This document shows positions 4,894-45,156 of a stretch of 64,000 nucleotides of DNA, piece by piece. Position numbers and translations under genes: made by a program. The notes below the pieces were generated by a model that did no database searches, was not told the DNA's origin, and worked only from the letters and a program-made list of their open reading frames with translations. Every line of letters begins with the position of its first letter. The first letter of the stretch is position 1. Where the stretch lies: the sequence record ON529853.1; one strand, given 5' to 3'.

Positions 4894-4919
4894 GTAAAGG
4901 AACCTCCCGCGACTGTCAA
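4894..4919 (-). promoter_or_regulatory. conserved early promoter (TTGACA-N11-TTCCTTTAC)
   Basis: Plus strand gtaaaggaa-N11-tgtcaa; 17-nt spacer to TAC-type -10. Confidence 0.8.
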
Positions 4920-42153: not shown

Positions 42154-42390
42154 TCAGAACACCTGCTCGTGGTCGACGAAGGCGGTGCCGTCGGGCAGGG
42201 CCGTGATGAACCGGTCCGGGGATTGGACGGCGGCTTCGACGACCGCGTCGATGTCGGCCTGCCAGCCGTCGTTATGGCTGCGGCGGTCAGCCGCCATGAC
42301 GTCCTTGAAGCGCGCGATGCAGGCTTCCGGCGAGGCGGCGAAGATTTCGACCGGCAGATGGCCGCGAAACTCTGTGGTGAAACGATACAT
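42154..42390 (-). CDS. hypothetical protein
   Basis: GGGAGGACCC RBS. Confidence 0.75.
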   Translation of the reverse strand: MYRFTTEFRGHLPVEIFAASPEACIARFKDVMAADRRSHNDGWQADIDAVVEAAVQSPDRFITALPDGTAFVDHEQVF

Positions 42391-42419: not shown

Positions 42420-42448
42420 GTCCTAGAGGGGCGAATGCCGCTTGTCAA
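42420..42448 (-). promoter_or_regulatory. sigma70-type promoter (variant)
   Basis: TTGACA-N17-TAGGAC. Confidence 0.7.
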
Positions 42449-42464
42449 CGCTCTCACGCCAACG

Positions 42465-42497
42465 AAAAAAGGCGGCGGACTGGTGTCCGCCGCCTCT
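42465..42497 (-). terminator. intrinsic terminator ending the hfa-like operon
   Basis: aggcggcggac-acca-gtccgccgcc-tttttt. Confidence 0.9.
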
Positions 42498-42521
42498 CTT
42501 GTTTGCCTTAGGTCCGAAGAC

Positions 42522-43502
42522 TTACGGGCGGGTGTTGATCGAGACCGAGGTGCCGATCGACTGGGCGGCGCCCGTCAGCGACCCGAAGCTGGAACCCGCG
42601 ATCGACAGGTTCGAGACCTGGGCCGAGTTGTGGTTCTGCGTGGTCACGCCAGCCACGATGTTGCCACCGGCCGACAGGTTGACCACGCCGCCGAAGGCCG
42701 AGGCTGCCAGGTTCGTCTTGCCGTTGAAGTTCGACCCGCCGAAGACCGTCAGGTTGGCCGTCTGGGACGAGCCCTGGTAGCCGTCCAGCCCGAAGTAGTT
42801 CGAGCCACGACCGTTTGCCTGCTCGATGGCGTAGGAGCCGCTTTGGGCCGAATCGTACTCGATGATGCCGCCGACGGCGAGCGAGCGCAGGTCGGTGTCA
42901 CGGGCAAAGGCGTTCCCGCCGAAGACCGTCGTATTGGCGAGTTGGGCACCGACGTTCGACTGCTGGAAGTTGGCGCCGTTGGTCACGGTGACGCCGCCGT
43001 AGACGGATTCACCCGAGATCGCGTTGCCGAACGCCGTCGCGCCGCCCGCCAGGTCGCCCGACACCGAGGTCGATTCGATGCTGACGTTCGCGTTCTGACG
43101 CACGGTGTTCGACTGACGCAGGCCGGTGACGGACAGGCTGTCGTCGGCGGACAGGTTGGCCGAGTTGCCGCCGGCGGTGCCGGTGAACGAGGTGTCGCGA
43201 CCGACGACCGCGCCATTGACGCTCAAGTTGGCGGTCTGGCCGCCAGCGGGGCCGTTCAGTTGATCGACGCGGCCGGGGACGAAGATGTTGTCGGCGGCGT
43301 TGACCTCCAGAGAGGTGCCCATGGCGATCGCGCGGCCCGTCAGGGCCGAGCCCACCGTGATGCCGTCGATGCTGACGTTCGCGGTCTGCGGCGAGCCGCT
43401 GGCGTTATGCAGGTAGCTGCCGTTGACGGTCACCGACTGCGCCGAAGCGGCGCCGGCGAACAGGGCGACCGAAGCGGCCGCCAGAAGGAAAGTCTTACGC
43501 AT
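42522..43502 (-). CDS. secreted repetitive beta-solenoid protein, HfaD-like
   Basis: Sec signal; G/S/T/N/A-rich; about 6 repeats with QxAN(L/V)S(V/I), AxG(N/T), QxN; third gene after CsgG homolog. Confidence 0.6.
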   Translation of the reverse strand: MRKTFLLAAASVALFAGAASAQSVTVNGSYLHNASGSPQTANVSIDGITVGSALTGRAIAMGTSLEVNAADNIFVPGRVDQLNGPAGGQTANLSVNGAVVGRDTSFTGTAGGNSANLSADDSLSVTGLRQSNTVRQNANVSIESTSVSGDLAGGATAFGNAISGESVYGGVTVTNGANFQQSNVGAQLANTTVFGGNAFARDTDLRSLAVGGIIEYDSAQSGSYAIEQANGRGSNYFGLDGYQGSSQTANLTVFGGSNFNGKTNLAASAFGGVVNLSAGGNIVAGVTTQNHNSAQVSNLSIAGSSFGSLTGAAQSIGTSVSINTRP

Positions 43503-43651
43503 TGAGATATTCTCCCGTTGATGAATGGACGAGGCTCGAATGAGCCCCGCTTAATCCCGACCGCTGAACTGGGAGCGGTCGTCCCTCCCGCCGGGAAGCC
43601 CCGGAGGTTGGCGACGCGGCGACCCAGGGCCGCCGCGAATAGGGGTGCGGC

Positions 43652-44536
43652 TTACGACCGGAAGCTGGCGTCGACGAGCGGCGCGCAGTCGCGGAAGTAG
43701 TTGCCGTAGAGCGGGTTCAGCAGTTCCAGCGTGGCGTATTCCAGCGTGGCGCGGACGCCGAGTTGGAGCGGCTCCTGGCCCTGCTTGCCGGTGTTGATGT
43801 CCACCAGATAGTCGCCGAAGAAGCGGAACAGGCCGGCGCGGGTCTCGTAGCCGATGATCTGCTTCTGTACCGAGACGGTCTTGACGACCTTCAGCGACTT
43901 GGTGTCGACCAGTCGCAGGTCCACCGCCGTGTTGATCACGTAGTAGCGCATGCCGGCCTCGAACAGGCTGACGCCCAGTTCGGCGCCGCCCGAGACGATG
44001 TCGTAGTTGACCTCGGTGATGCCGCCGACGATGTAGTAGTCGGAGCCCTGATACTGACCAGCGGTCAGGTTCAGGCGGCGCAGCGTGGCGGCCTGAGGGT
44101 TCGCGGGATCGTAGGCCGGGTCCTGGATCAGTTGGTTCTGGGTCAGGGTGGCTTCGTTGGAGGCGATGTCCATGTCGAAGCGCTCGACCTGTTCGATGCC
44201 GTCCAGCTTGCCCAGAGCCGACATGACCATGAGCGAGCCGCCTTGGGTGATGCGGAAGCCGCCTTCACTGGCCTCGTTCGAGAACTTGCCGGTGTAGTCG
44301 CGGATTTGGCCCACGGCGATGCGGTTCGGAACCACGCTTTGACGCGTCGCCTGGGCGAAGCATTGCATGGCGGGGTCCATCGGGCTGGAGTTCAGCGTCG
44401 GGCGGGTGCCGACCACGACCGGGGCCTGGCCCTGGGCGTTCAGAACCGGCGAGACCGGGGCGGAGGTCGAAGCGCAGGCGGCCGTCGACAGAGCCAGCGC
44501 CGACAGCGCGGCCAGAGAGATGATGCGATTTTTCAT
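43652..44536 (-). CDS. hfaB: CsgG/HfaB-family outer-membrane lipoprotein secretin
   Basis: STAA-C lipobox; IAVGQIRDYTGK, QVERFD, YYIVGGITEVNY, VDLRLVDTKSLKVVKTVSVQKQI, EPLQLGVRA. Confidence 0.85.
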   Translation of the reverse strand: MKNRIISLAALSALALSTAACASTSAPVSPVLNAQGQAPVVVGTRPTLNSSPMDPAMQCFAQATRQSVVPNRIAVGQIRDYTGKFSNEASEGGFRITQGGSLMVMSALGKLDGIEQVERFDMDIASNEATLTQNQLIQDPAYDPANPQAATLRRLNLTAGQYQGSDYYIVGGITEVNYDIVSGGAELGVSLFEAGMRYYVINTAVDLRLVDTKSLKVVKTVSVQKQIIGYETRAGLFRFFGDYLVDINTGKQGQEPLQLGVRATLEYATLELLNPLYGNYFRDCAPLVDASFRS

Positions 44537-44542
44537 GGTGTG

Positions 44543-45040
44543 TTATGCGCCCCCGCCCGGTTGACCATTCGTCTGCGAGCCGGAGCCCGTGTTCGTGTTG
44601 GTCTGGTTGCCCTGGTTCGTGACGGTGTTGTCACGAATGGTGGTCGTGGCGTCCTGGGTGTTGCCCGTCGAGGTCTGGTTGTTGCTGACCTGATTGGACG
44701 AGCCCGAGCACGACAGCGAGGCGCCGACGGCGGAGGCCGTGCAGTTGTTGTTGGTCACCGACTGGTCGATGAACTGGAACACGTTGTTAGTGTTCGCGGC
44801 CGAGCCGCCCAGCAGGCCCCCGGCGCCGGCCACGGCGGCGGGATTGCCGGCCTGAAGCTGGTCGAAATAGCCCGCCTTGTTCAGTTCGAACAGTTGCAGG
44901 CTGTTCTGCTTGACAGCGCGGTCGCTGGCCGTCCCGAAGCGCCACGGCGCGTCTTCGCCGATGGAGCGGTCCTGGGCGTGGGCGGCGCTCGCCGCCATGG
45001 CGAGAGCGACAGCAGCCCCCGCGAGAATCTTCATCCTCAT
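44543..45040 (-). CDS. secreted N/Q/T/S/G-rich protein, HfaA/curlin-like
   Basis: Sec signal ending AHA-Q; polar low-complexity C-terminus; first gene of the operon. Confidence 0.6.
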   Translation of the reverse strand: MRMKILAGAAVALAMAASAAHAQDRSIGEDAPWRFGTASDRAVKQNSLQLFELNKAGYFDQLQAGNPAAVAGAGGLLGGSAANTNNVFQFIDQSVTNNNCTASAVGASLSCSGSSNQVSNNQTSTGNTQDATTTIRDNTVTNQGNQTNTNTGSGSQTNGQPGGGA

Positions 45041-45130
45041 GTAAAAAGTCCCTCCGTATCGGCGCGTGCGCCTTGATGATGGGCCGGGGCGCGGGAGAGT
45101 TCCCGCCGACCCCGGTCAGTGATCGAGGGT

Positions 45131-45156
45131 GTAAAGAAACCTATTGCGTCTGTCAA
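45131..45156 (-). promoter_or_regulatory. conserved early promoter driving the hfa-like operon
   Basis: gtaaagaaa-N11-tgtcaa; -35 contains upstream stop. Confidence 0.75.

Follow-up and report, generated by a model that had tools for sequence, protein, structure and literature searches.

The holdfast-anchor genes of Caulobacter are arranged in the order hfaA-hfaB-hfaD. HfaB is required for HfaA and HfaD to reach the cell surface, and HfaA and HfaD form multimers that resist heat and sodium dodecyl sulfate (SDS) (PMC6707917; bioRxiv 10.1101/2022.07.20.500906). The curli (type VIII) system of E. coli, which comprises CsgG, CsgA/CsgB, CsgE and CsgF, follows a comparable logic: subunits that are rich in Asn, Gln and Gly and form beta structure are delivered by Sec and leave through a lipoprotein pore. 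Here, we analyzed a three-gene operon in a 64,000-nucleotide stretch of DNA (the window) that is 100% identical to part of the 348-kb genome of Brevundimonas phage vB_BpoS-Bambus (ON529853.1), a siphovirus of the Dolichocephalovirinae obtained from sewage on B. pondensis LVF1. All positions given are those of the window (window position = record position - 62000). The three genes, which we call A, B and D (BAMBUS_02030, BAMBUS_02020 and BAMBUS_02010), are all annotated as 'hypothetical protein', and each product carries an export signal at its N-terminus. Because B and D have recognizable homologues, every product has an export signal, and the genes form an operon, we favor, as more likely than not, the interpretation that it encodes a phage-borne outer-membrane secretion-and-display system of the HfaB/HfaD type, related to CsgG-dependent curli export. 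Most likely, the system would export a variable protein and display it on the surface of infected cells.

The product of gene B is predicted to be a CsgG/HfaB-family lipoprotein with a complete channel domain, in agreement with a preliminary description of this DNA. Residues 71–274 match Pfam CsgG (PF03783) with 64.6 bits (cut-off 20.8; E = 1e-17), residues 45–275 align to residues 26–245 of solved CsgG, that is, across the whole CsgG domain (E = 1.4e-9 with the single protein, 5e-16 with a profile), and the protein matches phrog_20175 at 8e-74. The signal peptide ends at Cys21, a residue that is near-invariant across the phage, HfaB and other clades; the residue at position -3 from this cysteine is threonine, which is atypical. 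We consider B a probable outer-membrane secretion channel.

Among the NCBIfam models, B matched HfaB (NF037935) best, and the match to E. coli-type CsgG was far weaker. However, its score of 236.5 bits lies under the equivalog cut-off of 300 bits, on a scale where validated HfaB reaches 407 bits and non-holdfast relatives score 188–222. Furthermore, in a neighbor-joining tree computed without bootstrap, the phage B proteins form a clade of their own, apart from both the other bacterial group and 19 true HfaB proteins encoded in hfaABD operons. B can thus be ruled out as an HfaB equivalog, and its specific link to the holdfast is consequently weaker than the family name suggests. The nearest cellular relatives (44–52% identity) are generic CsgG/HfaB-family proteins found across many Proteobacteria, in which fusion to an OmpA domain is frequent, and come from Sphingomonas, Novosphingobium, Shinella, Solimonas and one conjugative element. 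B is the best conserved of the three proteins, with a mean pairwise identity of 67% (A, 62%; D, 38%).

Gene D lies directly downstream of the HfaB-type gene and encodes a protein with a signal peptide, as is the case for HfaD; the signal peptide is of the Sec type, with a cleavage region ending in AxA followed by Q. Bambus D consists of six repeat units of ~50 amino acids. An AxAxGN motif recurs every ~49 amino acids in the phage D alleles and is present in validated HfaD as well, and the positions conserved across the alleles are mostly Q, N and G. Bambus D itself matched nothing in Pfam, NCBIfam or PHROGs. Sister alleles scored 24–40 bits against NCBIfam HfaD (NF037936), under the cut-off of 100 (E = 4e-10 for Marchewka D, 1.3e-7 for Kabachok D and 1.5e-5 for Colossus D); D homologues were found at 47–77% identity, and a metagenomic relative with 74% identity has the Pfam domain PF27277 'HfaD'.

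For more sensitive comparisons, we used 80 metagenomic loci (57–91% identity to validated HfaB), which yielded 52 diverse HfaD and 73 diverse HfaA sequences; this set replaced four near-identical HfaA/HfaD sequences from Robiginitomaculum, with which the first hhalign runs were too weak. A single-protein scan of genome contigs gave six loci, none of them from Caulobacter or Brevundimonas. Against a hidden Markov model (HMM) of the 52 HfaD sequences, Bambus D produced a weak match (7.6 bits, E = 0.0017). With hhalign, Bambus-type D aligned to them with a probability of 96.5% (E = 9.5e-10, 293 columns) and all phage D sequences combined with one of 99.0% (E = 4.6e-18, 342 columns). On the strength of these alignments and of the HfaD matches of its relatives, we regard D as an HfaD homologue over nearly its full length. 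The AlphaFold2 (AF2) model of D is all-beta, with a predicted local distance difference test score (pLDDT) of 84 and a predicted template modeling score (pTM) of 0.82.

Going beyond the preliminary description, comparison of alleles indicates that recombination exchanges the mature part of D as a cassette. Over 24 kb, Bambus and Marchewka show 99.4% identity, and they do not differ at all in the A and B proteins (100% identity), whereas their D proteins share only 32% identity. In the DNA alignment of these two phages, identity ends just past the signal-peptide codons and returns about four codons ahead of the stop codon. Three D types, 31–36% identical to each other, are distributed among five Brevundimonas phages (Bambus; Marchewka and Kabachok; Domovoi and Papperlapapp), while A and B are 92–100% identical in the phages concerned; of 55 pairs overall, 53 showed lower conservation of D than of B. 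Moreover, Marchewka and a further locus, L110, share 84% identity in D as against 73% in both A and B, which means that allele sharing is incongruent with the flanks. This pattern points to replacement by recombination in conserved flanks, together with long-lived alleles, and we take it to be a clear sign of a protein that meets a variable partner.

Gene A encodes a small secreted protein whose Sec-type signal peptide likewise has a cleavage region ending in AxA and followed by Q. The signal peptide is followed by a conserved N-terminal domain of ~45 amino acids, a Gly/Ala linker and a C-terminal part rich in N, T, Q and S; both the composition (N, Q, T, S, G) and the length of 165 amino acids are as originally described. 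Two cysteines in the C-terminal part are conserved in the A family. Searches of Pfam, NCBIfam and PDB with A gave no match and PHROGs returned nothing useful, while a profile of 20 relatives retrieved 35 proteins among 1.84 billion representative proteins. A belongs to a small separate family.

A is small, secreted and encoded directly upstream of an HfaB-type gene, like HfaA, yet the match is one of position only. Neither A nor any of the 35 family members matched NCBIfam HfaA (NF037934), an HMM built from the 73 HfaA sequences did not match A even with the filters off, and hhalign of A against these 73 sequences matched the signal peptide alone (mature parts: probability 9.3%, E = 0.0035, 16 columns). 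HfaA was therefore rejected as an identity for A, given the unmatched mature parts and the two conserved cysteines of the A family, as compared with none in HfaA. HfaE was rejected as well (ten cysteines, as compared with two in A). We thus classify A as a positional analogue of HfaA, not a demonstrable homologue. The N-terminal domain of A does resemble small open reading frames (ORFs) located upstream of non-holdfast bacterial HfaB-like genes (hhalign probability 97.5%, E = 6.7e-12).

The preliminary description had read the three genes as an hfaA-hfaB-hfaD operon, and roughly two-thirds of that reading holds: the gene order, the relationship of D to HfaD and the family of B are upheld, whereas the equation of A with HfaA and the status of B as HfaB proper are not. 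The parallel drawn with curli extends to B only. No curlin repeat was detected in A or D by Pfam or PDB sequence profiles, and none was indicated for D by a fold search, the results of which were not significant; neither a CsgE nor a CsgF homologue was found. Several proteins of uncultured Caudovirales in BFVD are named 'Curlin associated', and their matches to D were not significant. Going by these names, other phages may encode curlin-repeat proteins.

The operon appears to be a single self-contained transcription unit on the minus strand (42464–45156), bounded by a promoter-like box and a strong terminator (Table 1), a layout that the preliminary description had delimited correctly. Gene B starts 6 nt past the stop codon of gene A. 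The spacer between B and D is near-identical in Bambus, Marchewka and Domovoi, and it contains no match to the promoter motif and no Rfam family at gathering score. Two long plus-strand ORFs, 42435–43505 (356 aa) and 43763–45076 (437 aa), lie antisense to D and to A/B, respectively; these are antisense shadows typical of 66% GC DNA, not genes.

Table 1. Features of the three-gene operon of phage Bambus, listed in the direction of transcription
Feature	Window position	Strand	Remarks
Promoter-like box	45131..45156	-	TTGACA, 14 nt, YTTTAC; one copy of the phage-lineage motif
5' leader, ~90 nt	45041..45130	-	GC-rich hairpin at ~45084-45115; ribosome-binding site GGAGGG ahead of ATG
Gene A, BAMBUS_02030	44543..45040	-	165 aa; small secreted protein (predicted)
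Gene B, BAMBUS_02020	43652..44536	-	294 aa; predicted CsgG/HfaB-family outer-membrane lipoprotein, probable secretion channel
B-D intergenic spacer	43503..43651	-	149 nt; no copy of the promoter motif
Gene D, BAMBUS_02010	42522..43502	-	326 aa; HfaD-family secreted repeat protein (predicted)
Mature part of D, hypervariable exchangeable cassette	~42537-43433	-	From allele comparison
Intrinsic terminator	42464..42495	-	GC stem of ~11 bp and T6 run; 26 nt past the stop codon of D

As a scan for E. coli-type promoters gave no match, the case for a promoter was built on a repeated phage motif instead. The pattern TTGACA-N13-16-YTTTAC, with the core TTCCTTTAC, has 15 sites in the window, every one of them on the minus strand, where 0.01 would be expected (starts at 4894, 7669, 9383, 12696, 14378, 19400, 25181, 25640, 33623, 38341, 41594, 45131, 47743, 48636 and 50883); GTTGACA alone occurs 15 times, as compared with 4.1 expected. 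A ribosome-binding site and a start codon follow within ~20–40 nt of most copies. The box upstream of gene A is kept in Bambus, Marchewka, Domovoi, Kabachok and Papperlapapp, any changes being confined to its spacer, and the box together with the 90-nt leader is 97% conserved in four related phages. The motif was not found in CcrColossus, CcrPW or any bacterial locus fetched. Judging from this distribution, the box is a promoter-like element specific to this phage lineage. With TTGACA as its upstream hexamer, it is probably read by the host polymerase, and the motif probably defines the transcription units of the whole gene block. The sequence by itself does not bear out the preliminary description of it as an early promoter.

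The leader of the operon, which is longer than the leaders that follow other copies of the motif, folds with a minimum free energy of -37.5 kcal/mol (z = -2.15). Its hairpin (45084–45115, minus strand) is conserved, without covariation, and the leader matched no Rfam family. At the other end, the terminator hairpin (42470–42495) with its T-run has a folding energy of -36.3 kcal/mol (z = -5.57), and none of 200 shuffled sequences was as stable; the terminator is kept in the relatives, and the CcrColossus record has an annotated terminator at the equivalent place. Directly beyond it lies a gene for 78 amino acids (42154–42390, minus strand) that occurs as two allele types, 38% identical, among the five phages; upstream of this gene there is a variant box (42443–42449) in which GTTGACA is present and YTTTAC is absent.

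A search for the layout elsewhere, which the preliminary description had proposed, revealed the same three genes in seven cultured giant Dolichocephalovirinae phages (the five Brevundimonas phages, CcrColossus and CcrPW) and in phage-like metagenome contigs, one of which is a 500-kb viral genome. Every cultured carrier infects Caulobacter or Brevundimonas. Only 9 of 50,697 phage records matched B; the phiCbK-type records were not among them, though a phiCbK transcriptome exists. The units of CcrColossus (gp241-gp243) and CcrPW (gp250-gp252) are orthologous and also followed by a terminator, with identities to Bambus of 55% for B, 39% for A and 32% for D; they differ in belonging to phages of another host genus and in lacking the Bambus promoter motif. 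As had been anticipated, HfaB-like annotations already exist in these related phages: their B proteins are named 'putative CsgG-like curli assembly protein' or 'transcription activator protein hfaB', and the neighbors of B are annotated as hypothetical or lipoprotein. We found no paper on a phage HfaB/CsgG module in the literature searched, and the prior record consists of these database product names for B.

Bacterial genomes contain the same order of a small ORF, a CsgG/HfaB gene and a gene for a large repeat protein. These non-holdfast modules, identified in Novosphingobium, in a Rhodospirillales metagenome-assembled genome (MAG) and in an element linked to a type IV secretion system (T4SS) in several Pseudomonadota, share with the phage operon the N-terminal domain of A in their small ORF and, in some cases, Pfam HfaD in their large protein, in addition to the sequence identity in B noted above. 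Unlike the phage operon, they are cellular or conjugative, their B proteins form a separate clade and are in many cases fused to OmpA-like domains, and their large proteins reach 1029 amino acids; they are themselves uncharacterized. In the T4SS-linked element (L016:1-8933, L017), a small ORF, a CsgG/HfaB gene and a gene for a 454-aa repeat protein come right after genes for TrbL, VirB8, CagX, TrbI and DUF2274 and stand ahead of a serine recombinase gene; this is probably an integrative conjugative element common to several Pseudomonadota. In the Rhodospirillales MAG (L019:4957-7006), the CsgG/HfaB gene is followed by a tandem pair of HfaD-like genes, for 214 and 438 amino acids, indicating that the number of substrates varies between modules. 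A search of plasmids returned only seven distant matches.

If the operon does encode a secretion-and-display system, we envisage the following course. Host RNA polymerase would transcribe the operon after infection, and A, B and D would cross the inner membrane through Sec. B would then be lipidated and assemble into an oligomeric outer-membrane pore, through which D, and probably A too, would exit and then stay attached to the outside of the infected cell, in an assembly rich in beta structure with ladders of Asn, Gln and Gly. Such display would mirror what is seen in Caulobacter, where HfaA and HfaD depend on HfaB for their position on the surface. Most simply, A would dock to the channel or be targeted by way of its N-terminal domain, while its low-complexity tail would serve as polymer or nucleator. 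Since D would be exposed and exists as several old, recombining alleles, it most likely makes contact with a variable partner on the exterior. This partner might be other phages in the course of adsorption, or polymers on the surface of the cell itself, so that the operon would change either what can bind to the infected cell or the targets of the cell's own attachment.

Several observations weigh against this interpretation. The segment of B opposite the channel-lining loop of CsgG differs in sequence and includes a one-residue gap; it is conserved inside the phage and HfaB-like group, and the properties of the pore may therefore differ from those of CsgG. As A is not HfaA and its AF2 model was unusable (pLDDT 46), the role ascribed to A is a guess. 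Furthermore, a 568-kb phage-like scaffold (L014:6001-6775, L015) keeps A and lacks B and D, which are precisely missing relative to a syntenic 122-kb contig (L020:3504-6532) whose A is 84.6% identical over 136 aligned amino acids; A need therefore not depend on B. The rapid divergence of D could in part reflect low constraint on a repeat protein, and not selection. Finally, a Foldseek search of the D model against PDB and BFVD found no significant neighbor (CsgA ranked 37th, E = 2.1), so 'fibre' and 'solenoid' are unproven; of the earlier portrayal of D as a secreted, repetitive beta-solenoid protein, the export signal and the repeats are borne out, and the confident all-beta model does not extend to the solenoid.

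With respect to what a displayed D would do, we give about equal weight to two roles, each of which we consider rather unlikely when taken singly. The phage proteins might be incorporated into the polar HfaABD anchor of the host, take its place or poison it, leading to shedding or to firmer attachment. Caulobacter and Brevundimonas, the hosts of all cultured carriers, are holdfast-forming Caulobacterales, and the homology of D to HfaD, the gene order and the higher NCBIfam score of B for HfaB than for CsgG would all fit such a role. It is difficult to reconcile, however, with the position of B outside the true HfaB clade and under the equivalog cut-off, with nearest cellular relatives that are generic CsgG/HfaB genes from Sphingomonas to a conjugative element, and with an A protein that resembles neither HfaA nor HfaE; the three very different D alleles that coexist on one host strain are also odd for a protein that must fit a single anchor. 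In the other role, a layer of displayed D might hide or imitate the sites at which phages adsorb, by way of superinfection exclusion or a decoy effect, with competing phages driving diversification. Hypervariability of the cassette, its sharp recombination borders and the sharing of alleles independently of the flanks are consistent with this role, as are export signals that exclude a function in the virion and the recovery of several related giant phages from the same sewage source and host, with abundances that shift by season. The variability of D could nevertheless have other causes, PADLOC matched the operon to no defense family, and we know of no exclusion protein with this architecture.

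The remaining three explanations are unlikely. Given that B is the best conserved of the three proteins and that CsgG-type proteins are channels (PDB matches), B could act mainly as a pore in the outer membrane that exchanges solutes or weakens the envelope, to the benefit of infection or lysis, with A and D accessory or vestigial. This seems improbable, since in the comparison involving the A-only scaffold B was lost along with D and not alone, D is intact in every carrier, with conserved signal peptide and C-terminus, and lysis in these phages is served by a separate cassette that includes spanins (PMC3556154). Slightly less probable still is that the module was recently taken from a bacterium or a mobile element and plays no part in infection: similar bacterial modules are indeed mobile, one adjoining T4SS genes and a recombinase and a few residing on plasmids, but phage B forms its own clade across Caulobacter and Brevundimonas phages at ~55% identity, the GC content of the operon equals that of the remaining genome, all ORFs are intact in seven isolates, and the phage-type promoter is absent from all bacterial loci fetched. 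We attach the least credence to A and D being parts of the virion, such as fibres or decoration proteins. D is repeat-rich and all-beta, and the non-significant Foldseek lists consist mainly of tailspikes and beta-helix proteins. However, no fold match was significant, the cleavable Sec signal peptides of A and D are at odds with the cytoplasmic assembly of virions, and the genes of both proteins lie far from the structural module and adjoin that of a secretion channel.

Returning to secretion and display, the operon differs from hfaA-hfaB-hfaD not only in its proteins but also in its setting, as it belongs to a lytic giant phage, carries a phage promoter motif and has a hypervariable D. We therefore put forward, tentatively and as a possibility that we think more apt to fail than to hold, the wider proposal that giant phages of Caulobacterales coat the infected cell by means of a type VIII-like system of their own, maintain old alleles of the exposed domain as a pool and swap them among co-circulating phages, and use this coat in phage competition or in the control of sticking. 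Such a coat would be a secreted, non-virion counterpart of the exchange of receptor-binding-protein cassettes.

Enzymes and exclusion proteins of the inner membrane are the known tools with which phages alter the surface of their hosts; an entire pathway for export across the outer membrane, substrates included, would be a tool of another kind. If D is displayed as we infer, lytic giant phages would invest in the exterior of a cell that is soon killed. The field of holdfast anchoring would, in that case, gain natural, highly diverged variants of HfaD and a second type of small partner. Likewise, the phage operon would provide a compact model for the widespread and unstudied bacterial and conjugative modules that combine a small ORF, a CsgG/HfaB gene and an HfaD-like gene.

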